The position numbers and the translations under genes are program-made. Shown here piece after piece: positions 25,801 to 51,560 of a stretch of DNA of 64,000 bases; position 1 is the stretch's first letter, and every line of letters begins with the position of its first letter. This stretch comes from Schmidtea nova (taxonomy: Eukaryota), in NCBI GenBank assembly GCA_044892505.1, contig CM097882.1, forward strand, positions 431,086,001 through 431,150,000. The letters are read 5' to 3'. The notes beneath the pieces are model-generated. The model had not been told where the DNA came from, ran no database searches, and saw nothing but the letters and a program-made list of their open reading frames with translations.

Positions 25801-28800
25801 TATCACGGGCAAAATTATACCAATCGACTACTGTTTTGTTCGATAATTGCAACTCTTCCATTGTCAAATGATTGGGAAAACGCCGATTCCAATAATATAA
25901 CAGGAATACTAAATCGGGTAAACTGAAAAAAACCCCGATCAAATAGACTGAGTGTAGTTTTTGCATTTATAACACCGCCAACGGCAACAATCAATTCCAG
26001 CTTCGTAGTTGCTGACCGAGCAATGTTGGTGGCATGTAGGACATTGCAAGTAATTGGCCAATAATCACCACTTTGCCAAAAAACATATCGTAGCGTCAAT
26101 TGTCTGCGTTTTAATTACAAGTTGTCTCATATTCCATTTCTCACTTAAAATGGTATCCGTGTCTAATATCTCTTCTACCGTAACTAAACGAAAGCGGCTC
26201 ATCATTTGAAAGTGTGCCAGATAATGTATAAATTAAACAAATGAGTAATTTAAACAAAAACTTCAGGGGCGTTAAATTTTTAAGGGGGCGCAAAACTTCA
26301 CTAATACTCAACTATCTATCCAGTCTTGAATTTTGTTTAAAAATAATTTATAAATATCTAAATAATCTAAATAAAAAATAATTTTATTATTAAAACTTAG
26401 AAAATTTTTTACTTTCATTTTCGAATAATTCTAAAATAAAATAAATAATTTGAAATAATAAAACACAGACTTACTTTATCTAAAATTAATTTAAATTTTA
26501 TTTTTAATAGAAATATTTACTTATAATTTGCATAAATTAAATTAAACTTATAAATCAACTATAAACTATAATTTGTAATATAACTTTGAAAATTTTATTT
26601 AAACTATAATTTGCAACCTGACGGAATTATAATAAAAATAAAAAATTAATTTAATTTATGCATTTAACAAGAATAATAGTTTTTCAAAATTACCCCTTTG
26701 ATGCCATTTAGCTGTCAAATTTATTTACTCTTACCATGAATAATAGACAAAATGTCAATATTAAATTTGTTAAAATTTAAATTTTCATATTTTCAATAGG
26801 TTAACAGTTTTATCAAAAATGTTTAGTTAAATAGGATAAATTACGTATCATTCGATAGAGAAAAGTTAATTTTCCGAAAAAATTATAAGGAAAAATGTTA
26901 TATGTTGACTCTGAATATTATAATTCATTGAAAATTTTGAAATTTTCCATGATGTATAAATGACGAGAAAGAAAATGTTGTTATGAGACAGAAATAGTGG
27001 GATAATTGAATGATATGTATAATCTGAACATATATAGTTTGTTTATATTTATAGATGATCAGAATCGAGTTAAATTAAATAACAAAACATTTCCCGATGA
27101 TTATGTCAATGCAAATTATATTCCATTTATTAGTGATAAAAGGAAAATCGAGTACATAGCATCTCAAGGTCCGATTGAAGGCAGCTTGCCTCAGTTTTGG
27201 CAAATGATTTGGGAGCAAAATATCAGTTGCATTGCCATGTTGACCCAGTAGGAAATTATTTCATTTGTTGCTATATTATCTGAACCTAGAACGATGGAAG
27301 GAGACAAATTTAAATGTCTCCAATATTGGCCAGATGGAATTTGTGAAACTAAAGAATATGGAGATGGCAATAAACTGGCTGTCACCTTATTAATAGAGAA
27401 TAATTTAGAAGGCTATATAGAAAGGAAACTATCTGTAAAAAATTTGGTAAGAAAAAAATAAGAGAATATTTTATCAAACTTTGATCTTAACATTCAGGAG
27501 AATGAAAAAGAAAGGATTATAATACACCTCCATATGAATACGTGGAGTGATTTTTCGGCACCAAATATAGAATATTTTGATAAATATTTATTTCGATTTC
27601 AAGAGGTCTTATTCACGGGGAACTATCCATATCTAGTTCATTGCAGGTATAGCTAAACGCATATCCTACTGAATACTAACAAAATCTTTAATCTTTTTAA
27701 CCTATTAATATTTTATTTTTCATATTTTTTAATTATGTTGTTTAAAAGTTGAAATAATAATTTTCTTTTCATAATTTGCTTGGTATTTATCAAACATTTA
27801 CCAAAATCTAAGTAGCCTTACCCTTTACAGTTACTTACCTTGAAAATGATCAAATATGATCATTTAACGCTTTTAGAAAGAATATTTTAACCACATTTTA
27901 ATCACGATGTGTGATAATATTTGTATGTGAAAAAAAGCTTAATTTATTACATAATTTTAAGAATTAATTAATTAAATCAAATATTTTAATAGTTCTTGAA
28001 CATGGTCGACTGAAGGGTGTGTAACATCAAGATTGGCATGTCTGATTTTTAAATTTTTATCAAAAATGTCTTAATAATCAGTATGAACGCATTATAATAT
28101 GATGCGCTGTTGACAAGAGCTTTAAATCCAAAAATTATTGTGCAGCATGCGTGAACACATGCATTCTGAATGTTGTTAAATAGTTTGGATATCAATATGG
28201 GTATGTTGTGTTGATTAAATTGAATGATGAAATTGGTTTTGTAAAATTAAATAAATAATTTTTTCTAAATATTTTAAAAATATATTTAAAAGTTTGTTAA
28301 TCATTTTTAAATTAATTGCTGGATTAATTTTTAATAAATTAAAATTATATTTTGAAATAATATTTAAAATTTTAAACTTTAATTTATTATATTTTAAAAT
28401 TTGTTTAAATAAATTGAATTTAACAGATTTTTTCTCTGGATACCTGAAGATGACAAGGAGTCTGTCTAAATATATAGTAAGGATGTTTGATAAAAGGTGT
28501 CTTCCATTAAATAAACTTTGGGCATCCAAATAGGATAACTAAGGTTTTAGTAATTCCATTGCTTATATATGATCTGATATTATACTATTGAACCACAAAT
28601 GTTTCTCAAACGAAAAAAATAAACTTCAATATTATTTTTCCCAAACATTTACCAACCGATGATCCTTGACCAATAAACATAACATTGTACTTGGCGCAGA
28701 TAATATTACATAATATCATATTTTAATTGTGTGATCACATTTTCAATCACGTTAACATTTTTTTAGTGACAATCATATAAAGTTAATATTTATTTAATAT

Positions 28801-30055
28801 TTGATTAATTAATTAATTTTCTTTGAGTTTTGTTTAATTCTTGTTTTATAAAAGATTTTAAAAATTATAAAAAAAATTTTCTGCTTTCGGAATAAATTTT
28901 CACCTAAAACATAAATTTCTCACAAAACTGGTAAATTTACAAGTAAAGGGTATCAACTCTCACACAACACATTAAATCCTTACACTTCAAAAGTCTAAAT
29001 TTTCAAACTCAAGTAAAAATCTTCGTTCAATAACATACATAAGACAGTCAAATCTCTGATTTACCAAATGTAAAACGATAAATTTAAAAAGTAAAAAGAC
29101 TCGACTCTCACTTAAAACGATAAAGTATCTAAAAGCCTATCCCTACCATGGCAGACAAAAGAACTTTTAATTCACAGTTTTTACCTCAAGAAAGAACGAA
29201 ATAATAATTCAAATTCAACTTTAAAATTTACACATCACAAAATATTATTGAAACAANNNNNNNNNNNNNNNNNNNNNNNNNNNNNNNNNNNNNNNNNNNN
29301 NNNNNNNNNNNNNNNNNNNNNNNNNNNNNNNNNNNNNNNNNNNNNNNNNNNNNNNNNNNNNNNNNNNNNNNNNNNNNNNNNNNNNNNNNNNNNNNNNNNN
29401 NNNNNNNNNNNNNNNTTTTTAATTTAATTAATTTTTAAATAATTAAAATAGGTTTTTAGTTTAAAACCTCACACGCCACATATAGCATTATGTAACTTTT
29501 ATAATTACTGTAACCTTTCAAAAATTAGGAGGGAGTTTGTTTATAATTATTACTTAATTTATACAGTTTAGTTCATTTGGAGCCTGTGCTCGAGTCCCCA
29601 CTTCTCCCTACTGAGAGATTTTAATTATTAATTACAATAAAATTTGACAAGGAATATTAATACATAATATATATATATATATATTATCTTTACATTGAAA
29701 TTATTTGATGATAATAAAATGAATTACCTGTTTCAATCATTAAATTGTAACAACCAACCAAATAGTGCCGGAGTCGGGAGAACAGGAACTCTTATTTGTA
29801 TAGATCGTTTAGTGAAACAATTAGCGGACGACTGTCAAGAGATAAACATTTATCAAACCCTTCTGAAACTTCGGCAATATCGCAATTTGTTGGTCCAAAG
29901 ATCTGCTCAATATATATTCATCCATGAATATCTCGACAACTTCATTGCAAAATATTTGAGAATCGAAGAACTTGGCGGTAAAGTTTCTTTTAATTTCCTT
30001 ATTATGTCTCACAAGTGATAACTATTTAGAGGCATTATATTTCAATGAAGAATAA
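426..30055 (+). CDS. Multi-exon receptor-type protein tyrosine phosphatase (R3-like: FN3 repeats + kringle, single TM, single PTP domain); 5' end not resolved
   Basis: Manual splicing joins FN3-like exons (~450-2082, 7922-8870, ~10001-10644), a kringle exon (7645-7878), a TM exon (14118-14205) and PTP exons 23490-23598, 27055-27247, 27290-27446, 27498-27646, 29766-29977, 30030-30055. Junction phases in the PTP part are consistent (KNRFVNILP-Y-DQNRVKL; MLT-Q-TMEGDKFKCLQYWP; VHC-S-AGVGRTG). One juxtamembrane exon between 14327 and 23168 and exons hidden in N gaps were not located. Confidence 0.85.
555..1612 (+). CDS. RPTP ectodomain exons, fibronectin type III-like repeats
   Basis: FN3-like patterns (GPVTNISA...ISLSWQLP...GYYV; L...LPAFTRFNIDITP; FSRPAQPNGIIVKYRI; LKCRSYVVGVNPVN) linked by short introns 1015-1061 and 1208-1258. 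Confidence 0.7.
3651..3845 (+). mobile_element. Truncated copy of the purine-rich solo-LTR family
   Basis: Starts TGTTGAG; shares caaaataaaagaaatc(a/g)aacaataaaa with the copy at ~52560; no 3' end seen. Confidence 0.45.
3900..4770 (+). pseudogene. Degenerate Polinton/Maverick (adintovirus-type) major capsid protein, C-terminal part
   Basis: Frameshifted translation QLDFMDQPKYLLPGVNFHIRLKRSD...HRVRVEPSVLSGH...NAIY...YNGSH...FKHFN...CGIS...FIFVLAP...GNLKLYIKFAKAI...VHVIIYIE fits the Maverick MCP (F54H12.2-like) pattern as I recall it; no HMM was run. Confidence 0.7.
4820..5230 (+). pseudogene. Degenerate Polinton adenain-like cysteine protease
   Basis: FIGVFTHDKI...AIVVNT*SSTLSGEHWI...YSFDP...QHP...YGQHC, immediately downstream of the MCP remnant in the usual gene order. 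Confidence 0.65.
5257..5637 (+). CDS. Small ORF in the Polinton remnant, probable accessory gene
   Basis: 126-aa ORF directly after the protease remnant on the same strand; no recognisable domain. Confidence 0.3.
   Translation: MTCYFIDIVIDYSENVGGTIIKKLSIMIVNNNFRRKYWIYNDVPFYTGIGEPGQLELYEEDYHFCPSCTFKEIEDFGVTDKYKLTVLKKYFPNLRLIKYNVKEIEDFPTIFHVHIMIIQTMIIKAV
7645..7878 (+). CDS. Kringle-domain exon of the RPTP
   Basis: Translation DCFTDCHRPGSPYSGIVSTTTAGKICHPWKH...SNICSSVDNSHAWCPSNSVDKPWDLCDVTLC matches the kringle pattern (Y-x-G...T..G..C..W...N.C...WC...W..C...C). Bounded by AG/GT, with phase-1 joining to the FN3 exon at 7922. Confidence 0.8.
7922..10644 (+). CDS. RPTP ectodomain exons, further FN3 repeats (contains introns and a gap)
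   Basis: SLTIHWSNPTYPQKVIGY; PQKIQVKSLSLTTIQLTW...NGPANYYNI...NLKMCTEYCFVLSSGNGAGWS; LVNLSRNLIYSVKIQAEN; VHISWG...NGSIFEFIL. Confidence 0.75.
11415..11457 (+). ncRNA. Hammerhead ribozyme variant in tandem unit 1
   Basis: Core UUGAUAA-A-GGC UGU GCU-GAAAUAUU; stem II keeps pairing through a G-U; stem I imperfect. Confidence 0.55.
12209..12250 (+). ncRNA. Hammerhead ribozyme variant in tandem unit 2
   Basis: cccttgataaaggctgtgccgaaatattgtggtatt; intact core, stem I imperfect. Confidence 0.6.
12360..13735 (-). mobile_element. 5'-truncated Penelope-like retroelement (RT C-terminal part + GIY-YIG endonuclease) with 3' pseudo-LTR
   Basis: ORF 12585-13637: (G)LAMGNNLSP...RYIDD...IPFLD RT motifs, then NIVYKLSCQKCDATYIGETHRTFRTRLNEH (GIY-YIG). 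Truncated within RT and joined to an inverted pLTR at ~13736, a typical PLE layout. Confidence 0.93.
12449..12490 (-). ncRNA. Hammerhead ribozyme variant in the 3' pLTR of the PLE
   Basis: Same sequence as the reference copy; on the ORF sense strand ~95 nt downstream of the PLE stop codon. Confidence 0.75.
13737..13775 (+). ncRNA. Hammerhead ribozyme variant, inverted pLTR copy
   Basis: acacttgataaaggctgtgccgaaatattgtgttatt. Confidence 0.7.
13856..13897 (+). ncRNA. Minimal type I hammerhead ribozyme variant (reference copy)
   Basis: Stem I ACAC(13861-64)/GUGU(13890-93), extended by AAUA/UAUU; core UUGAUAA (13865-71); extra A; stem II GGC-UGU-GCC; GAAA; palindromic AUAU; predicted cleavage after AUU at 13889. 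Activity not tested. Confidence 0.75.
14118..14205 (+). CDS. Transmembrane exon of the RPTP
   Basis: DKTVWYVLICSTAVLMIFVTILILIRNHR: hydrophobic helix followed by basic stop-transfer residues. Followed by a 48-bp GT-AG intron and exon 14254-14327. Confidence 0.75.
14805..18008 (-). pseudogene. pol: Pol (protease, RT, RNase H, integrase) broken by stops and frameshifts
   Basis: LLDTGA (protease); WNTPLVCV, RICLDFRGLN, MPFG, YLDD (RT); LDTDAS...ELLAI (RNase H); H-H-C-C, VDFCGP, HTDRG, EQIER and YEGP (integrase). Confidence 0.95.
18120..19057 (-). pseudogene. gag: Gag with two CCHC zinc knuckles, interrupted by an in-frame TGA
   Basis: MATTLLANFVKPPDTFD...; reading through TGA at 18290-92 gives CWACTEMGHRRAEC and CSKCHKQGHFRHQC. 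Confidence 0.85.
19676..19830 (+). pseudogene. Merlin/ISXO2-like transposase fragment
   Basis: MIPESAIESDQ*STYNQLQTLGF...TINH*YGFTDPLTNASTN resembles the IS1595/Merlin SD...VNH...FVDP...HTN block. Confidence 0.55.
20896..21709 (+). mobile_element. Solo LTR, family B
   Basis: TGTAGGG...CCCAACA flanked by 4-bp TSD TAAT; shares gggaaacccgag repeats, gtaccagaa and ggagtcaga blocks with the other copies. Confidence 0.8.
21990..22495 (-). pseudogene. Mariner (DD34D) transposase remnant
   Basis: WLDKDEAP...KIMVSVWWS...PGKSITAETYCTQL...CHPPYSPDLAPTDYHFF...GINKLPLRWQNC across frameshifts. Confidence 0.88.
22697..22927. mobile_element. piggyBac-type MITE (231 bp)
   Basis: TIR CCCTTTCGC(A/C)CC at both ends, flanked by TTAA (22693-96, 22928-31). 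Confidence 0.8.
23168..30055 (+). CDS. PTP catalytic-domain exons
   Basis: Motifs KNRF, DYVNAN, YIASQGP, FWQMIWEQ, KCLQYWP, WSD (WPD loop), HCSAGVGRTG and VQRSAQYIFIH (Q loop) occur in order across exons. Confidence 0.93.
23921..24230. mobile_element. Head-to-head PLE pLTR palindrome with two hammerhead motifs (23981-24017 -, 24025-24060 +)
   Basis: Inverted arms around gtgtgtatgtaatatacac; the + copy has a damaged stem II (GGA/GCU); continues into the pLTR leader (gtgattccttggt). Confidence 0.75.
25140..26308 (-). mobile_element. Merlin (IS1595/ISXO2-like) DNA transposon, frameshifted transposase
   Basis: TIR GTATTAGTGAAGTTT(A/T)GCGCCCCCT at 25141-25166 and 26283-26307; 8-bp TSD CAACTATC (25132-39, 26309-16); VEIDETVLRKRKYNRG...WLFGG...ISD...HTQSIECAW...HLNEFMWR. 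Confidence 0.93.
27985..28140 (+). mobile_element. Fragment of a second PLE family (GIY-YIG 3' end)
   Basis: gttcttgaacatggtcga...agattggcat(g/a)tctgatttt...ttatcaaaaa is shared with 39360-39470. Confidence 0.45.
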
Positions 30056-37728: not shown

Positions 37729-38634
37729 TTATGAGGAAGGACCATCAATTATTATTTCAAATTGACTTTTAAGGTCCCCATATTTTGCATAATTATAGCG
37801 AAGAATATTTCCCAATTGACATTGCAAAAATATTATGGCGCATTGTTGCACTGCCATATGAATTGCCACAAACGGCTTTTTATAGCCGACCTGTTGAACG
37901 AACGGGTAATAAATGTTCGAAAAGTAACCAAGTCCGTTTCTTTGAGGATAATAGGATAGGTTAAAAATATTTTCCTTATCCGCTGCAAAAACTCCAGTAC
38001 AAGATAAAGTGATGCCTGGAAGCTTTTCATTGATAAGATTTGGGATAAATCCGTAAACATCGTTAATTGTAAGAAACAGACACAATTCCCCATTGGACTT
38101 CAGCGTTAGTGGGTTTGCGCATGGCCCGAAATCGGTAATATTAAACGGGCAAACGTAATCTATAACGTTGGGAATTTTTGTATCTTTACTAGCATCACAT
38201 GTTGCTACCTTAGCAAGTTTGCTTATTTCTGTAATAGAATTCATCAGCTTGTCGATGTACAGTTTATAGTTCACTGTAATTGCCGATGAATGCGAGGTGA
38301 ATTTTAACAAAAAACTAGTATTGTCCATGACGGGTAGAACTTGAATTCCAGGAGTGAGTCGAAGAAGGTTTGACTCACCCGTTAGGAAGGGATATTTGGT
38401 CCAGGTCATTGCCAAATATGCCGACATCAATGCTACTAATGCAAGCAAAAGTAAGATATAAAACAAAATGTAAAACGCAATGATCTTCAGCCAACTTAAC
38501 GGGGTTCTTCCAAGAATTTCCTTGGTTTTGTTGTTGTACAAAGTTTGAGAGAAATTATCAAAATGTTTCCGCACTCTGTGCAATCTTGGAAGAGTTTCTT
38601 CTCTGCTAGTTACTGATAAAGCATCTGTTGACAT
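37729..38634 (-). CDS. ATP1B: Na+/K+-transporting (P2C-type) ATPase beta subunit, intronless
   Basis: LYNNKTKEILGRTPLSWLKIIAFYILFY (hallmark N-terminal/TM motif), TPGIQVLP, Cys pairs, YYPF and KPFVAI in the ectodomain; 301 aa from ATG 38634. Confidence 0.93.
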   Translation of the reverse strand: MSTDALSVTSREETLPRLHRVRKHFDNFSQTLYNNKTKEILGRTPLSWLKIIAFYILFYILLLLALVALMSAYLAMTWTKYPFLTGESNLLRLTPGIQVLPVMDNTSFLLKFTSHSSAITVNYKLYIDKLMNSITEISKLAKVATCDASKDTKIPNVIDYVCPFNITDFGPCANPLTLKSNGELCLFLTINDVYGFIPNLINEKLPGITLSCTGVFAADKENIFNLSYYPQRNGLGYFSNIYYPFVQQVGYKKPFVAIHMAVQQCAIIFLQCQLGNILRYNYAKYGDLKSQFEIIIDGPSS

Positions 38635-39229
38635 TCTCAAAAATAAATTATTTAATAAATATAATATTAATATATTTATTATATTTAATTTATTAATTTA
38701 TTGTTTTCTAATTATTAATTTAACGAATCTAAAAATGAATAACTGTACATATTAAATATTTTATGCATAATTTATTTAGATTTATCAAAGGGAGGCGGAC
38801 AACGCTTGGATCTCACGGAATTGACTCAGTAATACAAAATAAATGAATATATAAATTTTATAGAAAACCTACGGGTACTATTCTTTATATATCTCCAGAA
38901 AGGGTTTGTGAGTTTAACACGTTGCTTGTCGCACGAATATTACGTGACTTGCCCAAGGCGCCAGCGCGGAATTTTACTGCATATTATGTTGAAATATGAT
39001 TTACGGCAGATAAGGTTAGTTGTATAAACGTCTTTTATGCATTTTTCTTGGTGGGTCATCGGTGACTCTGAAGACGTTGCAGACCATTTTTATGATTATC
39101 AATTGTTCCAAACTGTTAACCTTTAGTTGCTAAGCAGCTACTATCATTTTGTTGGAGGAATTTAAAAATTATAAAAGGAAGATATGAAAGTAATTGAGTG
39201 GTTTAAACTTTAGAATTGTCTCCAATCCG

Positions 39230-39540: not shown

Positions 39541-39789
39541 TCCCGGAATATTCCCGGATTATTTGTCATCAATTAAGTATTCCAATATGCATGAATAAAG
39601 CATATAAAAACAATGAACAGAGATCAGATTCAATATCAGAAATACTAACTCGCAAGGAATTTTCCAAAGTTTCCATGGGAAAGTATGACCTGTTCTTATT
39701 TTTTATTACATGTAATGATGATACTGTTTCGCATAAGTATGAAGTCGCAAAAAGAAATGAAGGTTACTAGGCCTTTTCTTAAATAGCCG

Positions 39790-40080
39790 AATTTCTTTGC
39801 TGTCTCCCTATCCAAAATTCTTTTTCCATTAGATTCCACTCCAAACAGATTATTTGATTTAGTAACGATCAATCTTGAGCCGCTTGAGATGAGACGGTGA
39901 TTCATGTTCTTGACACCGTCTTGGCACGTGCACCAAAAATGCCCCATGTGCACCAAAAAATATTCCGAACTTATAAAATTTCGCGGACCACGAGGAAAAC
40001 TCTTCGGATTCTCAGAGGTCTAAGGACCTGAGTTTGGAAGTAATTCTTTAGCCGGCAATGTTGTATTCGAATGCAGAGAC
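39790..40080 (+). pseudogene. Possible LINE (CR1/L2-like) RT 3' remnant
   Basis: NLEPLEMRR...YKI...FFSRQ loosely follows the L2/CR1 C-terminal pattern; weak. Confidence 0.25.
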
Positions 40081-40316
40081 GACAAGAAGTCTCTCAGTAT
40101 ATTTTATATTACACCAACCGGTATATAATATCTATTAAGAAACATACCACTAGAACTAAATAAGATCTCTAATTTTACAAACTTTCATATCACCTAATAT
40201 ACTAATAATAAACAATTGTTTGTTTACCTTTGTTGATATTTTTCACTTTGTCAGTTTCACGTGACTGACCAAATTAAATCATTTGTAAATGATTCGTATT
40301 TCATTTCATTAAAACT

Positions 40317-43300
40317 ATGAAGACCTTAAGATCTTCGATTAAAAAGAGTTTTAATTCAAAAAAACCTTCAAAAGGAAGAGAAAAAAATAATGAAATATAC
40401 GATGAAGATGAGGATGACCCTCAATCCAGTAAAAACGAAGGTGTTTTTTCTTTGAAATTGAAAAGTATTAAAGATATAAACAATAATGAAATTATTCGTT
40501 TAGAAAAGGCAAAAGAAGAAGGAACATTGAATGATATTGAAACCTTCGAGGATGCTGCATCAGTTGAAAATGAAAACAATGGAAGAAGTTTTAAAAACAA
40601 AACGTGTGGCAAACCAAGTGATTCCCCTGATTTCACTCGAGAGTCAAGTCAGGAAAAGATGTTGCTTGAATGCGTAAATGTGTATGACACCGAAACTCTA
40701 GATATATGTCCACAGAGTCTAATTGAGAGAGGTAACAAAACAAATATAAATCAGCCAAACAAAAAACAACCAATTCAATTGGATGTTATGGTGCTTTCCA
40801 AGGAAGTTTTCAAAGAAAAGAAATTAAACAATACAAAAGATAACAAGATTATTAACAAACATGTTGATGATATTTGTGATGATAAAAATGTGAACATATC
40901 AGCAGATCAAATAGAGAGATCAAAGTTTAGCCAAAATGATCAATTGAAGGTTGAGAAAACAATAGAAATCACTTCTCAAGGTCCAATGTCTCCGTTAATC
41001 AGTAAGAGCTCTAGCTACACAAAAAACGAACCAACTTTGGATAAACCGAAAGATGTACAATCCGAGAACGACTTGTTAGATATCAAATCAAATGACAATG
41101 GTGAAGAAATGTATGCCGATGAGTACCAAGAAAATCAAACGGAGGATGTTCGTGTTGACGATGAAACTATTGATAATAGTAAAGTCGACAGTGATCAGAT
41201 TTCAGAGAATTCTTCCCATTCTGCTGTTCATGACAATCATTTAAAAGAAAATGAACAAAATCAAAGAAATAATTTAAACAAAGATTTAGAATATTTACAG
41301 AAGAAAATTCCAAATTTCAAATCTAAATTAAAGAATCAACTAAAGAATTTACAGAATCAGTCGAAGGAACAAGCCAAAAGTACTCGATTCGATGACAACA
41401 CGAGGAAAGTAACTGTAAACAATATTTCTCAAGCCTTACCTGAGAGTGATGATATCTATGATGAGGATGAAAATAACATTGATGATAATAAGAAAAACGA
41501 CCATGAAGAGGTTTATGATGATGATGGGGGTGGTGATGATGAAAATAGCTCCATTAATAATACTGACCAATTATCAGCAGCAAGTTTACAAAAGGATATT
41601 CAAATCAATCATTCCAATGAAGATTCTCAGCTTCAGTGTCTATCTTCAAAGAAAGGGAAATGTTCTTTCAAATTTGGCTCATTGTCTCCAATTTTAAACA
41701 AAAATTTACAGAATTTGCAGAAGAAAACCAAAGACTTCAAATCAAGTATTAAGAATCAGGTTAAGAACATACACCATCAGTGTAAGATAAACAATAATAA
41801 TAATACGCCATTTGAATGTGACGAGGTATATGAGGCAGAAATGGACAAGGAACCTCAAAGTCTTCCTGAGAAAGATGATATTTATGACGACGATGAAGAT
41901 AATATTATCGTGAACCTCAAGGATCTTAATAGTCATGACAATGAAGAGGTTTATGATGATGATGATAATAATCTAAATACTAGAGATCAAACGTTAGAAA
42001 CCATTTCGTCAAAAAATAGTAATGACAAACAATCAGTTCAGAAATTAAAAGAAAAGAAATCTTTCAACTCAACCTTACACTTCTTCGATAAAAGGACTTC
42101 AAATATACGGTCAAATATAAAACATCAAGTAAAACAAATTCAAACCCTTTCTAATGCAATAGGGGCAAAAGCTTTATCTAGTAATAAAGCAGTTAATAAT
42201 CTTGACACAAATGATAAATCTTCAGGCAAGGAAGCTAAGAATATGTTGGAAAATGAAGAGATGTATGATGACGATGAAAATACCAACTGTAATGCTGATA
42301 TAAATAATAAAGAAATGGAAACGGCTGGTAAAGATACCGAAACCAACAAAGAATCAACAGATGTTCAAAGCAGACAACAAGTAAAAGAAATCACACTTAA
42401 AGAAGTCATAAACACAAAAGAAGTGGTTGACACTAGCAAACAGTCTAAAGGGAATAAAAACAAAACTTGGAACCTCAAAAAGAAACTTGAAAATATAAAG
42501 GTTACCTCTTCAAATAAACACGTATTAGCAAAAGAAGATGAAACCAATATGAAGAACGATGATTTGCTAGACAATGAAATAATTGATAGAAAACTGGAAT
42601 TAAATAATAATAAAGATGTCTATGACGAAGATGAAAATGAAAGTAATGTCAATGACAATGATGATAAAATATCAGAAACAATTTCAGAAAAGGAGATCCA
42701 AAGCAATCATTCAAATGAAGACGCTGAGAATCAATGTTTACCGTCGAAGAAAAAAAAATCATCTTTCAGATTAGACTCATTGTCCCCAAATTTAAACAGA
42801 AATATTCGGAATTTGCAGAAAAAAACGAAAGATCTCAAATCAAGTTTTAAAAATCAAGTAAAGAGTCTTCAATTTCAGTGCAAAGCCGATAATACTCCTA
42901 ATGATCAGGACAAGAAACATGATGAAGGTATACACAAGGAACTACAAAATAAAAAGAATCAGAGCGTTTCTAATACCGATGACATTTATGACGACGATGA
43001 AAATAATGTTATCCACGAGGACCTCGAGAATCACGATATCCATGACAATGAAGAGGTTTATGATGATGATGATCATGATGATGATCATGATGATGATCAT
43101 GATGATTATATAAATAATCAAAAAAATAATAATCAAGCAATAGAAACAATTTCGCTAAAAGATAGTAATGAAAGAATATCAAATCATAAACTAAAAGGAA
43201 AGAAATCTTTCAACTCAACCTTACACTTCTTTGAAAAGAGGACATCAAATATGAGATCAAATATCAAGCATCAAGTGAAACAAATGCAAAGTGTATGCAA

Positions 43301-46300
43301 TTCAACAATGGAAAGAACTTCATCTGTTAACGCTGAAGTAGAAAACCAGTGTAAAACAGATAACGAAAAGACATTTTCTGGAAATGACGAATTGTATGAT
43401 GAAGATTCGGAAAAAGAAATTCTTAATAAAAAAATTCCAAACTTTCCTGAGAATGAAGAGGTCTATGATGATGATCGTGAAGAAGGTTCTGATAATAAAA
43501 GTAATTTTAATGACAATGACGAAAATGGGCAAATCTCAGAAATAGGATCCACAGAAGACTGTCAAGATCCTTCGCAGTCCTCAAAGTCTTTTAGTTTGAA
43601 TTTAATTTCACCAATTCTAAATAAAAACTTCAAATTCCTACAAAAGAAAACAAACAAATTGAAATCACATTTGAAGAATCAAGTAAAAAGTCTGCAACAT
43701 CAGTGTAAGTTAAATAAAGAGAATAATACCTTTGCAAATGATGAGGTGTATGATGAAGATATGGAAAAGGAATTCCATAGTGATCAAACTCAAGCCTTAT
43801 CCGAGAAAGATGATATTTATGACGACGATGAAAATACTTCACACAATGATAACACAGAGAATAATACTGTCAACGGTCATGAAGAGGTTTCTGAAGATGA
43901 CAACAATAATAGAAATAGAAAACCTTCAATGTTTAACTTGAAAGATAAAATGAAACATTTACAAATCCTTACGAAGACAAATAAATCCCAATCGTCATTG
44001 GCAAATGAAGAAGTATTTAAGGATGACGACAAAATAGACGATACCCTTTCAAACAAAGATGCCAGTTTCGACGTTATATCTCTACAAGACACTTGTGATA
44101 ACGATAGAAGTGATATCAAGGATTCCAATTCGGAAGCAATGGAACAAGTAAGTTTAAAGTCCTTTAATAATGAGAAGAAAAGTCAGAAAAAAGAACAACT
44201 GAAATTCGCCAAAAAATCCCAATTACAAAGTATAAAATATTTTACTAACAGACGAACGTTTTTGGAAAGAATTAGCAAAAATAAAGAAAATCCAAAATCG
44301 AACATAAACGAAGAGACTTATGATGACGACGAGAATGATGTTGAAAATAATGAAACCGAGAACCAGCTGATTGAAAGGAAACTAATTCAAAAGACAGAGA
44401 AAGCGTCTCCCCAAGGTGATATGTCAAGTATGTCAAATAGTACTTTTAAAACTGAAAATTCTTTAAAGAAAGATAAGAAAGATAAAAGGTCCTTTAATTT
44501 TAATATCGAAAAGAAACTTTCAACGTTCAAAACAAGTTTAAAGGATCAAGTAAATAACTTTCACAAGGATTCAAAGCGAAAGATAGAACTACAAAGTAGC
44601 GAGCCATTCAATCTCAATGAAGAGGTATATGATGATGATGAAAATAACGAAATTCACGAAATAAAAAATGGTAAATTGTGTGAAAATGAGGACGTTTATG
44701 ATGATGACGAAAATGTTAATTGTGACTGTGACAAAACCGATCAAATCTCAACAGTGACTTCACAAAGTGATGTTACTGATAATAATTTAAACAGCGACCT
44801 CCAGAATCCTTCATCGCCTCCAACAAAAAAGAAATCTTCATCTATTTTGAATTCAATATCTCCTTTATTTGATAAAAACATTCTTTATTTAGAGAAAAAA
44901 ACCTCTAAACTCAAAGTGAAGCTGAAAGGCCAGATTAATCAGTTGAAAAATCTACCAAAGATAAAAACGAAAAATGTTCACATTGGTAATAATGAAATTT
45001 ACGATGATGATGAAGATAATAATGCTGAGAAAAGCTCATGTGATGGTGAACTTACATCAATGAAGAATGTTTCTGACCTACCAACAAATTCTGAAGATCC
45101 ATCTCAAGAAAATACAGATCGTTCATCACAGGGATCGTTGCAATCTCAACAGCAAGCATCAAGGATAGATTTAAAACTGTCACCGGGAACAAATAAAGAA
45201 AAAAAGAATATAATTGACAAAAATCTGAAATTGATGAAAGCCAAAACACGAACCATGGCTCAAAATATCAAAACGCAAATGCTTATTTTTAAAGAATCAA
45301 CACGGACTTCTAAGGGTATCCAAGGTGATCAGGACAACGTGGAAAGTAAAGAAACCGATGATATCTATGACGATGATGAAAATTGTAATGAAATAAAAGA
45401 AAAACTTGACCTTGAGATGATTTCTGAACAAGATGTCTATGATGATGATAATAATGACATAAAGGATGAAAATTCCGAAACTCATGATCAAGACGGTTTG
45501 GTATCGTCTAATGCTAAAAAGAAAGATCCGAAGGATTTTAAAAATAACTCGATGTCGCCAAAAATTTCAGAAAGCTTATCTTATATTCAAATGAAAAGGG
45601 ACAGTTTGAAGACTAATATAAAATTACAAGTTCACAACATTAAAGGCTTTACTAGAAACCAAAGTAATAAAGGAAACTTAGTGAAAATTAAAAAAAATGG
45701 AATTCGTGATCTAATTGAAGAAGTGTATGATGACGATGAAAATAGTGAAAGATCAAGGACCAGTGACGATAATGGAGCGAGCTTTCACAATAATGAATCC
45801 ACTGAGGTTTATGATAAAGATGACGACCAGATAGAAGAAAATGATGAAGAAATATTTGATGATTCTGATAGCGATCGCTCAATAGACATGAAATATATCA
45901 AGAACCAATTCAACAATTTTTCCTCCAAGTGGCAATCAAAATTGAAAAAGAAAATGGTTAAACTTAATCAAAGGTCCAAACTTTATTTCCGAAAAAATGA
46001 AAATGTTGAAAGTGAAATCTCTAAATTTCCTTATTCAGTTGATGATGTTTACGATGACGATGAAGCTGATCAAAAGCAGTCAGAATCCTTTAGTGAAGAT
46101 CAGGAAACAAAAGATTTTATTGATGAAAAAAACGAAATTAATTTAGTTCCAACAATGTCTTATTATGATAAAAGACTTGACAGTCTAATAAATTTAAAAA
46201 AGAAAATTCACAAACAATTAAGCACTTCGGCGCAATTGAAAAATAGCAAAGTGAAACCGGAAAATCCTTTGACGGAAAAAGTATCAAAAGAGTTTGACTT

Positions 46301-47093
46301 TAAAACTGATGATGAGGTTTACGATGAAGATTCAGATAACGACGATCCTAATGCAGTTTCGAGCAAAGGTCCAATTCAACGAATACAAAAAGAAGATCTG
46401 AATAGTGGAAAATCAGAAAATATGAATCCATCAATGTTTAACGAAAGGAGAAACGATAAAGAATTTAAAAAAAATATTGAATTGAAAATAGTAGAAAATT
46501 CGGCGGATTCAAATGTAGGAGATAAAATTGATAAAGGTGTTGAAAATAAAGATACACTACTTCCTTCAATTATTGCTCTTCTAATTTCTCCTGAACCCTA
46601 TGCTCAATATTTATCAAACAAGCTCCAAAAGAAAATTACAAATCCATCCAATATTATGGATAACCCAGTCCATTCCGAAAAAATACCATTAACAAATCTT
46701 ATGGAAAATTATAGCGAAACAACAAAGAAAAAATCCTCGGAAATTAAAAACGTCAAGAAAATAGAAGACTTTTCGAAATTTGGATTCTTATCCTCAATAA
46801 GTGATCATAAGTGCCAAGACGAATCAGTAAAGGTTTTACCAGTCAGGTCTCTATCTATGAATAAAGACATAACTCCGCCAAATATATCAAGTAATGAAAA
46901 TAACTGTTCAACCAAAAATCCGGTAACCGATCTCAAAATAAAGAAACCCGACATAGGTCCGCAAAGACCACCGAAATTAAATCGCTTTATTGGAAGTAAC
47001 GAATCTCAAAGTCAGTCTGACTTCAACAAGGAAGTCCCCCCAAAATCATCGCCAAGTGTTCGAGAAAGAATAAAAATGAATGAAAATTTATGA
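40317..47093 (+). CDS. 2258-aa intronless, low-complexity acidic protein with about 24 tyrosine motifs and a basic helical repeat; function unknown
   Basis: 6.8-kb uninterrupted ORF in AT-rich DNA with internal duplications at DNA and protein level; no signal peptide, TM segment or globular domain recognised. Confidence 0.9.
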   Translation: MKTLRSSIKKSFNSKKPSKGREKNNEIYDEDEDDPQSSKNEGVFSLKLKSIKDINNNEIIRLEKAKEEGTLNDIETFEDAASVENENNGRSFKNKTCGKPSDSPDFTRESSQEKMLLECVNVYDTETLDICPQSLIERGNKTNINQPNKKQPIQLDVMVLSKEVFKEKKLNNTKDNKIINKHVDDICDDKNVNISADQIERSKFSQNDQLKVEKTIEITSQGPMSPLISKSSSYTKNEPTLDKPKDVQSENDLLDIKSNDNGEEMYADEYQENQTEDVRVDDETIDNSKVDSDQISENSSHSAVHDNHLKENEQNQRNNLNKDLEYLQKKIPNFKSKLKNQLKNLQNQSKEQAKSTRFDDNTRKVTVNNISQALPESDDIYDEDENNIDDNKKNDHEEVYDDDGGGDDENSSINNTDQLSAASLQKDIQINHSNEDSQLQCLSSKKGKCSFKFGSLSPILNKNLQNLQKKTKDFKSSIKNQVKNIHHQCKINNNNNTPFECDEVYEAEMDKEPQSLPEKDDIYDDDEDNIIVNLKDLNSHDNEEVYDDDDNNLNTRDQTLETISSKNSNDKQSVQKLKEKKSFNSTLHFFDKRTSNIRSNIKHQVKQIQTLSNAIGAKALSSNKAVNNLDTNDKSSGKEAKNMLENEEMYDDDENTNCNADINNKEMETAGKDTETNKESTDVQSRQQVKEITLKEVINTKEVVDTSKQSKGNKNKTWNLKKKLENIKVTSSNKHVLAKEDETNMKNDDLLDNEIIDRKLELNNNKDVYDEDENESNVNDNDDKISETISEKEIQSNHSNEDAENQCLPSKKKKSSFRLDSLSPNLNRNIRNLQKKTKDLKSSFKNQVKSLQFQCKADNTPNDQDKKHDEGIHKELQNKKNQSVSNTDDIYDDDENNVIHEDLENHDIHDNEEVYDDDDHDDDHDDDHDDYINNQKNNNQAIETISLKDSNERISNHKLKGKKSFNSTLHFFEKRTSNMRSNIKHQVKQMQSVCNSTMERTSSVNAEVENQCKTDNEKTFSGNDELYDEDSEKEILNKKIPNFPENEEVYDDDREEGSDNKSNFNDNDENGQISEIGSTEDCQDPSQSSKSFSLNLISPILNKNFKFLQKKTNKLKSHLKNQVKSLQHQCKLNKENNTFANDEVYDEDMEKEFHSDQTQALSEKDDIYDDDENTSHNDNTENNTVNGHEEVSEDDNNNRNRKPSMFNLKDKMKHLQILTKTNKSQSSLANEEVFKDDDKIDDTLSNKDASFDVISLQDTCDNDRSDIKDSNSEAMEQVSLKSFNNEKKSQKKEQLKFAKKSQLQSIKYFTNRRTFLERISKNKENPKSNINEETYDDDENDVENNETENQLIERKLIQKTEKASPQGDMSSMSNSTFKTENSLKKDKKDKRSFNFNIEKKLSTFKTSLKDQVNNFHKDSKRKIELQSSEPFNLNEEVYDDDENNEIHEIKNGKLCENEDVYDDDENVNCDCDKTDQISTVTSQSDVTDNNLNSDLQNPSSPPTKKKSSSILNSISPLFDKNILYLEKKTSKLKVKLKGQINQLKNLPKIKTKNVHIGNNEIYDDDEDNNAEKSSCDGELTSMKNVSDLPTNSEDPSQENTDRSSQGSLQSQQQASRIDLKLSPGTNKEKKNIIDKNLKLMKAKTRTMAQNIKTQMLIFKESTRTSKGIQGDQDNVESKETDDIYDDDENCNEIKEKLDLEMISEQDVYDDDNNDIKDENSETHDQDGLVSSNAKKKDPKDFKNNSMSPKISESLSYIQMKRDSLKTNIKLQVHNIKGFTRNQSNKGNLVKIKKNGIRDLIEEVYDDDENSERSRTSDDNGASFHNNESTEVYDKDDDQIEENDEEIFDDSDSDRSIDMKYIKNQFNNFSSKWQSKLKKKMVKLNQRSKLYFRKNENVESEISKFPYSVDDVYDDDEADQKQSESFSEDQETKDFIDEKNEINLVPTMSYYDKRLDSLINLKKKIHKQLSTSAQLKNSKVKPENPLTEKVSKEFDFKTDDEVYDEDSDNDDPNAVSSKGPIQRIQKEDLNSGKSENMNPSMFNERRNDKEFKKNIELKIVENSADSNVGDKIDKGVENKDTLLPSIIALLISPEPYAQYLSNKLQKKITNPSNIMDNPVHSEKIPLTNLMENYSETTKKKSSEIKNVKKIEDFSKFGFLSSISDHKCQDESVKVLPVRSLSMNKDITPPNISSNENNCSTKNPVTDLKIKKPDIGPQRPPKLNRFIGSNESQSQSDFNKEVPPKSSPSVRERIKMNENL

Positions 47094-48111: not shown

Positions 48112-48650
48112 TAGTGTTTGCAATCCCGGGTCATTTTTTCAATCCCGGGATCCCGGGATTGAAAGAATGTACACCAATAAGAAGAAAACCATGCAGTTAA
48201 TAAATAGAACACTTTTTTTAATTCCATTGGTATTTTATTATAGAAAACAATAAAAAATAATTCATGTTTAACAGAATATGTATTAATAATAAATAAAAAC
48301 AAAACTAACTACATATTATTTTTAAAATAACATCTAAGGAAACACAATGAGTCAATCGATTTGTCATCTAGCTGTGTTCTTAAATTTGAAATTATAGTAC
48401 CAGAAGCAGAAAACGCCCGCTCTAACTCTACACTGGTAGGTGGAATAGTAAGCAAATCATTGTAGACGCGTTCTAAATGTGGTCCTCGATGGCTGCTTTC
48501 TTCAAATATCTTCATCTCCCTTCCAAAAACAGTGATGAGTTTTAGACCGGGACAATTTTCGGTAGAGTTTGGCCTGTTTTCGATTGACACCAAACTATCC
48601 ATGAATCTTACGTTGCAATTCGTTTTCAAGATTTCCTTGTTGCAGCGTCT
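48112..48650 (-). pseudogene. hAT 3' end with dimerisation-domain remnant
   Basis: LLTIPPTSVELERAFSASG...RTQLDDKSIDSLCFLR; terminus TAGTGTTTGCAATCCCGGG with repeated ATCCCGGG subterminal motifs. Confidence 0.8.
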
Positions 48651-49029: not shown

Positions 49030-51560
49030 TTAGGTTAGTTTAAAAATAAATTAAACACGTAATTAAATTCACAAACTATTTATTGAACAGACATTATTAA
49101 AATAATTAATGGGATGGATGGACTTGTTGTTCACTAAAAAACTTCTCGAATCTCGGAATAAAACTGGATATATGGACCATCATTTCCTGTACGAACGATA
49201 TTAACTTTATTACCGTGACTGCCGAAAACTCAGTTTTGCATAAATATGACGTTGGAAATGGGATTAATATTCGTAGAGATTCACCACTAAGCAGTGGATA
49301 ATCTTCTTTTAATGATATCCAAAAATCAGAAAGTTGCATTCTACAAAATTTTGACTTCAATTTATTATTGCAAGACAAATCAATAAGAGATTCGTCTAAA
49401 AAACGTAAATTTAGATAGAGCTTTGGCTTTAAATGGGTCTTGTATCCATGTGAATTTGTCAATATTATCTGATTGAAAGAATTTTTCAAACCATTTGATA
49501 AGCTGTGATAGATAATCTTTAAAAAGAGATTTTATATTGCATGACAAATCAATTTCATTGAAGATTACAAACTGGTGCAACAAGGGAAAACAATCAATGA
49601 AACTATCTGCATTAATTTTTCTTTTCTATTGTTGAGCTGGCGGAATCCAAAATAAATTTTGTTTAAATTCATCAAAAATTAAATATATACAAAGGGAAAC
49701 AAATTCCAAACGCACGATAAAGCATTAGACAGTAAAGTGACACAAAAGATTATAAAATACTAAAATATAAATACTCTTCATACGAACCCCATTTCATAAG
49801 TCTGTCGAAGTAGGGTTGAAATAATAGAAAAGAGGCTTCTTAGAAGAGAGCCCACAATTTGAATGCAGGTCGGACTTACATATGAAGAACCGCACGAGAA
49901 TCGAATGTGGTATATTATTGCTTGTATAGTGAATACGAAAACATGATCAAAGAAAAAAATCGGTAGCAGAGTAAAGAAAATAATTTATTAAAAATTACAG
50001 AAAAAGTCCCTATTGAAATATCTTAAAAATAACAGTGATAGAAATGAAATGAAATTTGATTTTTTTAATCAATAAAATAACGCACAAAAAACAATGGATA
50101 CACACACCATTTAATAGAATTAAAAACAAATATTTTAGAAAATATATAAATCAAATTATAAAGTTAAATTTATGAAAAATAAATAAATACTCATTAAAAC
50201 TAATAAGTAAGTTGAAATCGTTAATATCATTATTTAAAAAACAACATATGTAGGCGTCAATTGAATAAGTATAAATAGACGCTGAAAAATCACAATCTAA
50301 ACTTCTTGGTATTACATATGTATGCGAGTTTAATCAAAAAAAGTCTGTTTCCACAAAGTGTTTGGCATATTCATGTTTTTGTTCATCAAAGAAAGTGTAT
50401 ATTCCATGCTGAAAATGGAATTTACGAGGCAATAAACTCGTGCAAGATAGCCATCATGAGTGGCAGTAATACAACAAAGTTGTGTATTCAGCTCGTATAT
50501 CTTCTCACAATGTTTTGAAAAATATTGTTTTCAGTGGCCGAGCTTATATATAGTTTACTATTTTTATCACACATTCTAAAACTATATTTAGGGGAGGACT
50601 CATGTACTTTGATGCAAGTGCTTCTCTCTGAATAATGCAATGGATCCAAACTGAATCTAAGCGCCTGAAATTCTTCATAAAAGCCTGACATCGAACTACC
50701 ACCATCCGTACAAACACCAACGCACTTTGTCCATTCTAAATTATTTTCAAACATGAAGATATTCGGGATCTTAAACCAGTTCTGAGCCTTTGTACTTTCA
50801 GTAATTCGTTTACAAAAGAGAAGGTCTTCAACAATTGAATTATAATCTAAATTCCATGTGCAAAAAAAATTACGTGTGCAAATCAAGTATGCATCCTTAT
50901 TATTGTATGAAGCCCCATCGAGCTGCAATCCAAATTCACTTCCTTTTAATTTTTGAATTAATTGAATATTGAGATTCTCCCCCATGTGCTGAATTCTGCA
51001 ACAATTGATATTGTTAGACAAAATGTAGTTTGACAGCAGTTTCCCCGCCGACTCGCCTATAATAATGTTCACTAAATCTACAGCAGCTGGTAAAATGAGT
51101 TGCTCTGCGATGGTATCCGGTTTTTCACTTATTAACTTGATATGCAACTTTGCATGATGCTAGCAAAGCACTATTTGGTATTAGAATATATTTATAAATG
51201 CTGCTTTTTTGTTGTTTTAATTCAATTAAGTTTCTGGTAAAAGATTTGCGAGGTTTACCAACAAAGTTAGAATGGTTGGTTTCTAAATGTCGTTTTAATA
51301 TATTTGGAAGCACAGAAACTGGTGCCAAAGTTTTCATACACATGACACACTGTGGTCTCTCTTTCATTTTCATTTGTCGATGTAAAACAAAAATCCAAAT
51401 AACTGTCGTCATATTTACGATAATTATGCTTCCTATAACCCCTGTCACTTCTTAACCATGGAGAATTTTCCAAGGTCATTTATTTTTAATTTTTAAATCC
51501 ACAAATTTTTTTCGACTATTCAACACAATTTTTGGCAGTGCCATTTTCTCAAGCGTTATT
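49030..51560 (-). pseudogene. Buster/Charlie-type hAT (ZBED5/SCAND3-like) transposase, fragmented
   Basis: RKYDDSYL...RPQCVMC...LKRHLETNH; KPDTIAEQLILPA...FGLQLD; GVCTDG; FWISLKEDYPLL...LIPFPTSYLC. Interrupted by an AT-rich block at ~49600-50350. Confidence 0.9.

Follow-up and report, generated by a model that had tools for sequence, protein, structure and literature searches.

A single-exon gene of Schmidtea nova encodes a repeat protein with 23 acidic tyrosine motifs, possibly a multivalent docking scaffold

Here we describe one gene of Schmidtea nova, an open reading frame (ORF) at positions 40317-47093 (+) of a 64,000-nucleotide stretch of DNA (GenBank assembly GCA_044892505.1, contig CM097882.1, positions 431,086,001 to 431,150,000 of the forward strand). 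The whole stretch is called the window below, and it is numbered from its first letter. The ORF is intact and comprises 2258 codons in a single exon, the only stop being the terminal one. The protein bears 23 copies of an acidic tyrosine motif, distributed over 16 tandem units in which the motifs are followed by a basic module. The original prediction, made by a model from the letters alone, spoke of a giant intronless protein, and the complete single-exon frame of 2258 residues bears this out.

The ORF is a real gene, since the 2258-codon frame is free of internal stops and duplicates of the basic (helix) module within the protein differ with a ratio of nonsynonymous to synonymous substitution (dN/dS) of 0.10-0.16. 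The base composition of the stretch predicts 189 stops in this frame, yet none is found before the terminal one; the remaining five frames across the ORF contain 102-399 stops each. Between the module duplicates dS is saturated and the proportion of synonymous differences (pS) is 0.5-0.9, and for a longer super-repeat of 382 residues, taken whole, dN/dS is 0.30. Low dN/dS together with high synonymous divergence indicates that the duplications are old and that purifying selection has acted on the protein. The product is rich in Lys (289), Asn (274), Asp (254), Ser (241) and Glu (206); charged residues make up 36% of it, its net charge is -117, and it contains 41 Tyr and 2 Trp.

An in-frame stop lies 27 nt upstream of the ATG. 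As no AG occurs among the 24 bases between the two, there is no splice acceptor through which an upstream coding exon could be joined, and a hidden upstream exon carrying a signal peptide is thereby ruled out. The protein itself has no signal peptide, as had been claimed: its N-terminus is basic and the top 19-residue Kyte-Doolittle window reaches only 1.06. No membrane segment is found anywhere in the protein by Kyte-Doolittle hydrophobicity, and no long direct repeats flank the ORF.

Of the 41 tyrosines, 23 lie within the pattern [VILMT]-Y-[DE]-[DEK]-[DE], and the full consensus is N-[DE]-[DE]-[VI]-Y-D-[DE]-D-E-N. Two additional tyrosines (Y266 and Y505) stand in a weaker acidic context, and three decayed copies are without Tyr (EEVSEDD at aa 1189, EEVFKDD at aa 1231 and EEIFDD at about aa 1845). 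When the residues of the same protein are shuffled, the long form of the pattern is seen 0.01 times on average (maximum 1) and the short form 0.06 times, as compared to 20 and 21 observed, respectively. The motif is found nowhere else in a six-frame translation of the window. Eight pairs of motifs are present, with a Tyr-to-Tyr distance of 19-28 residues that is mostly 23-24. Thus the count of about 24 motifs, the decayed copies with Phe or Ser and the frequent pairing that the original prediction had noted are all confirmed.

The positions within the motif are not equally constrained. Asp occupies +1 and +3 in all 46 cases (23 of 23 at each), although Asp and Glu are about equally used in the rest of the protein (171:163); the probability of finding Asp only at these positions is about 4e-14. 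In 20 of the 23 copies Val or Ile precedes the Tyr at -1. At +2, -2 and -3 both Asp and Glu are tolerated, Asn or Asp is present at +5 in 17 of 23, and Ile is found at +7 or +8 in several of the copies that come first in a pair. The units have drifted to a mean column identity of 30%, whereas none of the 23 copies deviates at Tyr, +1 or +3, so that the spacers do drift while the tyrosine context is kept, as initially described. Synonymous codons vary from copy to copy (GTT, GTC, GTG and GTA for Val, TAT and TAC for Tyr, GAT and GAC for Asp), which means that the tyrosine motifs are not recent copies of DNA. Selection acts on single motif positions (Val/Ile at -1, Tyr, Asp at +1 and Asp at +3) and on the helix module, and not on the spacers. 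Generic acidity cannot explain the motif, since Asp alone is used at +1 and +3 despite the equal use of Asp and Glu elsewhere. The sequence pattern supports the view that the motif is a short linear motif, multivalent and under selection, rather than a by-product of composition.

The 16 tandem units are 75-120 residues long, and each consists of one to three acidic tyrosine motifs (weak and decayed copies included), then a linker, and then the basic module. The module recurs about 16 times, always located between groups of tyrosine motifs, and its approximate consensus is KKKxSF - SLSP - x-L-N-K-N-L-x-x-L-Q-K-K-T-K-x-L-K-S-x-I-K-N-Q-V-K-x-L-Q. This 16-unit design behind the motifs goes beyond what was first described. 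A profile built from an alignment of the protein cut into its 16 units recovers all of them when scanned against the protein itself, at 14-87 bits each and 794 bits in total. The parts of the ORF, with the 5′ boundary discussed above, are as follows (helix denotes the helical part of the basic module):

40290-40316 (+): in-frame stop (40290-40292) and the 24 bases before the ATG, without AG
40317-40412 (+): N-terminal basic stretch with KKSF (aa 1-20), resembling half a helix module
40389-40412 (+): first tyrosine motif, NEIYDEDE (Y28)
40413-41090 (+): non-repeat N-terminal region, aa 33-258, without a family match
41091-41372 (+): unit 1, weak motif EEMYADEY (Y266), helix module aa 321-350; 54.5 bits
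41436-41792 (+): unit 2, DDIYDEDE (Y381) and EEVYDDDG (Y400), flank with KCSF and SLSP, helix aa 458-491 (41688-41789)
41862-42152 (+): unit 3, DDIYDDDE (Y523) and EEVYDDDD (Y546), KKSF flank, helix aa 583-610; the weak copy DEVYEAE (Y505) sits immediately upstream
42243-42521 (+): unit 4, EEMYDDDE (Y650), degenerate helix module at about aa 709-735
42600-42887 (+): unit 5, KDVYDEDE (Y769), flank with KKKKSSF and SLSP, helix aa 824-858
42966-43301 (+): unit 6, DDIYDDDE (Y891) and EEVYDDDD (Y915), KKSF flank, helix aa 965-994
43374-43712 (+): unit 7, DELYDEDS (Y1027) and EEVYDDDR (Y1050), flank with SKSF and ISP, helix aa 1098-1131
43728-43988 (+): unit 8, DEVYDEDM (Y1145), DDIYDDDE (Y1168) and decayed EEVSEDD, short helix module
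43998-44291 (+): unit 9, decayed EEVFKDD, degenerate helix module; 26.6 bits
44298-44576 (+): unit 10, EETYDDDE (Y1335), KRSF flank, helix aa 1394-1417
44607-44966 (+): unit 11, EEVYDDDE (Y1438) and EDVYDDDE (Y1461), SISP flank, helix aa 1514-1547; best unit, 87 bits
44979-45302 (+): unit 12, NEIYDDDE (Y1562), helix aa 1632-1659
45345-45656 (+): unit 13, DDIYDDDE (Y1684) and QDVYDDDN (Y1708), SMSP flank, helix aa 1747-1777
45705-45995 (+): unit 14, EEVYDDDE (Y1804), TEVYDKDD (Y1832) and decayed EEIFDD, helix aa 1858-1890
46029-46250 (+): unit 15, DDVYDDDE (Y1912), helix aa 1949-1975
46299-46646 (+): unit 16, DEVYDEDS (Y2002), last and degenerate helix module aa 2095-2108
46647-47090 (+): non-repeat C-terminal tail, aa 2111-2258, rich in Ser, Lys and Pro, with one PxxPxK stretch and no family match

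Where the protein is best preserved, two subtypes of the module, SLSP-ILNKNL... and KKSF-NSTLHFF..., alternate. The DNA still reveals the 382-residue super-repeat, 41922-42184 (unit 3) and 43068-43330 (unit 6) being 75% identical. The N-terminal flanks of the helices are enriched in two serine patterns, [KR]-x-SF (11 observed, 2.6 in shuffles) and S-[LIM]-S-P (6 observed, 0.5 in shuffles); both resemble sites of basophilic and proline-directed serine phosphorylation.

Structure prediction by AlphaFold, run with the units as its alignment, assigns order only to the basic modules. In the model of unit 2, residues 85-118 form a single 34-residue helix with a predicted local distance difference test score (pLDDT) above 90, and the remainder, including both tyrosine motifs, is predicted to be disordered (pLDDT 47-65). 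In the model of a helix-motifs-helix segment, two confident helices (H16-50 from unit 5, pLDDT 85-93, and H157-186 from unit 6) enclose a disordered acidic middle (pLDDT 41-55). The models show no packing of helix against helix (predicted template modeling score 0.24-0.33, and 0.24 for the helix-motifs-helix segment). The helices carry a net charge of +3 to +10, with hydrophobic positions every three to four residues, each followed by Lys. Their amphipathicity is moderate: the maximal hydrophobic moment is 0.22-0.60, compared to 0.34 +/- 0.10 in shuffles. As a result of this arrangement of motifs and modules, the sign of the net charge alternates along the whole array. The protein had been thought to be disordered, and for the parts that bear the motifs the prediction agrees (pLDDT 41-65).

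No relatives of the protein were found. Pfam gave no match to the whole protein at E up to 1, and no family recurred among the 16 units searched separately at E up to 10. Word-index searches with the whole protein and with a 187-residue piece retrieved no relatives, and PDB sequences, the ESM Atlas and JGI metagenome contigs had no match. The unit profile, run exhaustively and without a length filter against 1.84 billion representative proteins, found none at E up to 0.001. With a profile so strong (794 bits on its own protein), even one or two recognizable units elsewhere should have scored. It should be noted that the collections do not contain this protein itself and may also miss the proteomes of its closest relatives. 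The absence of the family outside flatworms is well supported by these searches, and the gene is probably lineage-restricted and planarian-specific. The description of the protein as undescribed thus stands.

The stretch is present in four public sequencing runs (X1 to X4) from one 2024 study, at 99-100% identity, colinear with the genome and without joints. The runs have Tn5/Nextera ends, and their contig sets amount to 0.3-0.5 Gb in 2.6-5.5 million pieces; they look like libraries of DNA rather than RNA, and hence confirm the sequence, not its transcription. In runs X2 to X4 of the four, contig depth over 39635-40427, a stretch of 0.6-0.8 kb that lies immediately upstream of the ATG and spans it, is 2-3 times that of the ORF body. 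This may be a promoter-type peak of a Tn5 library or a low-copy repeat. In one contig of run X4 the match starts at 40213 and is preceded by 255 unrelated letters. No AG precedes 40213, so the junction is not a splice acceptor; it may reflect a polymorphic insertion or deletion located some 100 bp upstream of the ATG. In one contig of run X1, 41972 is joined to 45003 via 24 other letters. Because both ends of the join fall in GAT-rich motif DNA, chimeric assembly across repeat units is the most likely explanation, the alternative being a deletion allele.

The other features of the window are these:

14523-19343 (-): Gypsy element, 4.8 kb, with gag, reverse transcriptase, RNase H and integrase ORFs
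27006-27248, 27252-27458, 27462-27653 and 29668-30015 (+): phosphatase-domain exons of a receptor-type tyrosine phosphatase gene (single domain, cytoplasmic end)
37729-38640 (-): Na/K-ATPase beta subunit, single exon (Pfam PF00287, E 1e-35); an identical protein is absent from the public gene collection
48309-48629 (-): remnant of a hAT transposase, C-terminal dimerization domain (E 8e-11), downstream of the ORF

The phosphatase gene has introns, one of which, about 2 kb long, interrupts the catalytic signature VHC / SAGVGRTG. It lies 10 kb upstream of the tyrosine-motif gene on the same strand, with the Na/K-ATPase beta gene between the two. The ORF was considered as the last exon of the phosphatase gene and rejected: the sole phosphatase domain of that gene ends near 30015, the ATG is preceded by an in-frame stop without an acceptor, and the intervening Na/K-ATPase beta gene is on the opposite strand. 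Cargo of a giant retroelement was likewise rejected, the sole pair of long terminal repeats (LTRs) in the window (14523-14809 and 19057-19343) enclosing the separate 4.8-kb Gypsy element. These LTRs (2 x 287 bp) are 100% identical, so the Gypsy insertion is very young. The ORFs at 49106-51448 (-), beyond the hAT remnant, match no family; they could be what is left of the hAT element after decay. Another region, 9807-14266, is dense in direct repeats that overlap one another (73 registers of a 300-nt reference, with a periodicity of about 0.8 kb) and is interrupted by runs of N. The G+C content is 20-36% per 2-kb window, mostly near 29%. With an intron-bearing receptor phosphatase, a Na/K-ATPase beta gene and Gypsy and hAT elements, the genomic context is eukaryotic.

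What might such a protein do? We lean, tentatively and with less than even confidence, toward the view that it is a lineage-restricted, non-secreted, largely disordered multivalent docking scaffold, the motif tyrosine probably being a phospho-acceptor. Each motif would then be a docking site and a phospho-acceptor at once. Several non-receptor tyrosine kinases act on substrates in which an acidic field surrounds a hydrophobic -1 residue, and enzymes such as Src, Fes or Syk would find here the context they favor. The position-specific constraint implies that something reads the side chains at -1, 0, +1 and +3, and a reader module could contact them as it would an extended bound peptide; the main contact positions of SH2 ligands are 0, +1 and +3. 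A reader that is two-headed or dimeric would fit the frequent pairing at 23-24 residues. The basic helices may provide a second interaction surface, for a membrane, for an acidic partner or for the acidic blocks of the protein itself, and serine phosphorylation at their flanks could tune that surface. With 23 sites and 16 helices, partners might be clustered into large assemblies.

This view can be taken further, to a flatworm-specific cytosolic super-adaptor. In it, an acidophilic kinase would phosphorylate the 23 tyrosines, a reader of Asp at +1 and +3 (SH2-type or other), with a class of specificity not yet described, would bind them, and helices under the control of phosphoserine would tether the assembly to membranes or link it to itself, making it a switchable signaling condensate. 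We consider this fuller version rather unlikely.

Several points weigh against the docking scaffold. Phosphorylation of the tyrosines is a supposition, and no RNA run that would show expression is among the public runs listed for the stretch. No orthologue that would show conservation between species was found. The invariant Asp at +3 is outside the preferences of known SH2 ligand classes (Nck, Src and ITAM, the immunoreceptor tyrosine-based activation motif), and with such a mismatch the reader would have to be an unusual one. The Src SH2 domain, for example, prefers pYEEI, and we know of no described motif class with a preference for Asp at +3. Finally, a protein with this charge pattern might function unphosphorylated.

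The last point leads to the alternative that fares best, namely that the protein is a charge-patterned polyampholyte that self-assembles independently of phosphorylation, into a condensate or gel where Tyr acts as a "sticker" and not as a phospho-acceptor. Association with itself, with nucleic acids or with membranes would be through electrostatics and tyrosine contacts. The regular alternation of charge sign, the high content of charged residues (36%, net -117), the 16 confidently predicted basic helices set apart by predicted disordered acidic parts, and the lack of a known Pfam domain in the whole protein or its units are all what one would expect of such a protein. It leaves unaccounted for why Asp and never Glu is used at +1 and +3, why Val or Ile is at -1 and why pairs are spaced by 23-24 residues. 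The AlphaFold models also do not dock the acidic motif on the helices, although this is weak evidence. On balance we find this explanation unlikely, but one to be taken seriously.

Ca2+ ligands typically show a strict preference for Asp against Glu, and high-capacity binding of Ca2+ or another metal could thus be the function of the motif. Y-D-x-D-x-[ND] is like the first half of an EF-hand-type DxDxD/N loop, with Asp at +1 and +3 in 23 of 23, Asn or Asp at +5 in 17 of 23, and Ile at +7 or +8 in several first-of-pair copies; a hydrophobic-aromatic pair precedes the loop-like part. When set against the EF-hand loop, D-x-[DNS]-x-[DNS]-G-x-[ILV]-x-x-x-[ED], however, the motif fits positions 1, 3 and 5 only. 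Position 6 is Asn, not Gly, and position 12 lacks a conserved Glu or Asp. None of the 16 units gives a match to an EF-hand or other Ca2+-binding family, even with E up to 10, no helix-loop-helix is predicted where the motif lies (pLDDT 41-65), and a spacing of 23 residues is too short for paired EF-hands. Metal binding is, in our view, improbable.

About equally improbable is a nuclear or nucleolar chaperone-like role, in which acidic-aromatic motifs would capture basic proteins such as histones, with the Lys-rich modules serving as nuclear localization signals or nucleic-acid binders. Several peptides that bind H2A-H2B have an aromatic anchor set in a run of acidic residues. The alternation of acidic and basic blocks follows the logic of Nopp140 or nucleoplasmin, and clusters of the KKKK type are present. 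Set against these likenesses are the absence of a Pfam match to a histone-chaperone or Nopp140 family, and acidic blocks that lack the clusters of Ser and casein kinase 2 sites of Nopp140.

That the protein is secreted and tyrosine-sulfated is very unlikely. The acidic tyrosine context does suit sulfotransferases, and the octapeptide DIYDEDEN (aa 379-386) is identical to a stretch of factor VIII (EDFDIYDEDEN), the Tyr of which is a classical sulfation site. The missing signal peptide had already been held to argue against secretion and sulfation; the protein indeed has no secretory signal or membrane segment, and no upstream exon for a signal peptide can be joined. Least credible is the suggestion that the protein, if from a parasite, mimics host phosphotyrosine signaling in the manner of Tarp or CagA: the likeness to repeated acidic tyrosine motifs is only formal, no secretion signal is present, neither Pfam nor the profile search showed similarity to any effector family, and nothing points to a parasite, the organism probably being a free-living flatworm.

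Two known motifs were tried and rejected. LQKKT in the helix module recalls the LKKT/V motif of the helix in a WH2/VCA unit, which also has an acidic segment with a conserved Trp, but no unit matches WH2 in Pfam at E up to 10, the 34-residue helix is too long, and the aromatic residue is Tyr, not Trp. The FFAT consensus, E-F-F-D-A-x-E, which binds VAP, has two aromatics in an acidic tract; by inspection, neither register sets Y, +1 D and +3 D on its critical positions, and the small residue after the Asp is missing.

If the docking scaffold is the right reading, the protein would be among the most multivalent tyrosine-motif scaffolds known, and would be made from a unit without known relatives. 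The strict Asp at +1 and +3 would predict a reader or a kinase specificity outside the current catalogue, and the protein could serve as bait for a new motif-reader pair in flatworms, a regeneration model. Otherwise the protein is just a further orphan among charged repeat proteins.

How does the protein compare with better known systems? The closest parallels are in SH2-docking sites, to which the motif had originally been likened. The resemblance holds for the acidic Val/Ile-Tyr-Asp context and fails at +3, where Asp is unlike the Val of the ADAP YDDV site and the Val or Pro of Nck ligands. The central region of ADAP (FYB1), with its Fyn-site tyrosine and two EVYDDV sites, similarly has paired tyrosine motifs in an acidic disordered setting, with Val or Ile at -1 and Asp at +1, and the ADAP peptide DDQEV-pY-DDVAE shows phospho-dependent binding of SLP-76, Nck, PLC-gamma, CRK, Gads and RasGAP (PMC2908683). 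ADAP, however, has few sites, Val at +3 and folded, helically extended SH3 (hSH3) domains, whereas here there are 23 sites, Asp at +3 and 16 basic helices. Kinship is not indicated, since no hSH3 or other Pfam domain is found, nor any PDB match, although the PDB holds hSH3 structures.

Arrays of YDxV sites that bind Nck, as in nephrin, Tir of enteropathogenic E. coli and A36 of vaccinia, also share Asp at +1, Ile or Val at -1 and the acidic context, and in those systems several sites jointly drive the clustering of the adaptor. The Tir peptide EEHI-pY-DEVAADP is bound by the SH2 domain of Nck (PMC9333988), the consensus of which is pY-D/E-x-V/P (PMC8187788). Our motif conforms to it at +1 (Asp in 23 of 23) and departs from it at +3, where Asp, again in 23 of 23, replaces Val or Pro. 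The Nck arrays are moreover membrane-anchored, and the present protein has no membrane segment. It is also distinct from ITAMs, in which two YxxL/I sites are 6-12 residues apart: the +3 residue is Asp and the pair spacing is 19-28.

Tarp of Chlamydia (ENIYE) and CagA of Helicobacter (EPIYA) offer a parallel of form, with tandem disordered repeats that keep the tyrosine context while the spacers vary. These are secreted bacterial proteins acting in a host, whereas the present one is encoded by a nuclear gene of an animal genome and has a repeat unit of its own; Pfam and profile searches revealed no sequence similarity. In the acidic a3 region of human factor VIII, the peptide EDFDIYDEDEN contains the octapeptide DIYDEDEN of unit 2 (PMC7244179). 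Factor VIII is secreted and sulfated in the Golgi, unlike a protein without a signal peptide, and the identity, a single stretch of eight residues, is convergent. In Nopp140 and treacle, finally, long disordered proteins have about 10-16 regularly alternating acidic and basic blocks, as here. Their acidic blocks are clusters of Ser for casein kinase 2, in contrast to the Ser-free tyrosine motifs of the present protein, in which Pfam found no C-terminal domain of Nopp140 (SRP40). In sum, although disordered, multivalent scaffolds with tyrosine motifs or charge patterning are already known as a general kind, the combination of a basic helix with a Y-D-x-D motif, repeated 16 times, is a new design.

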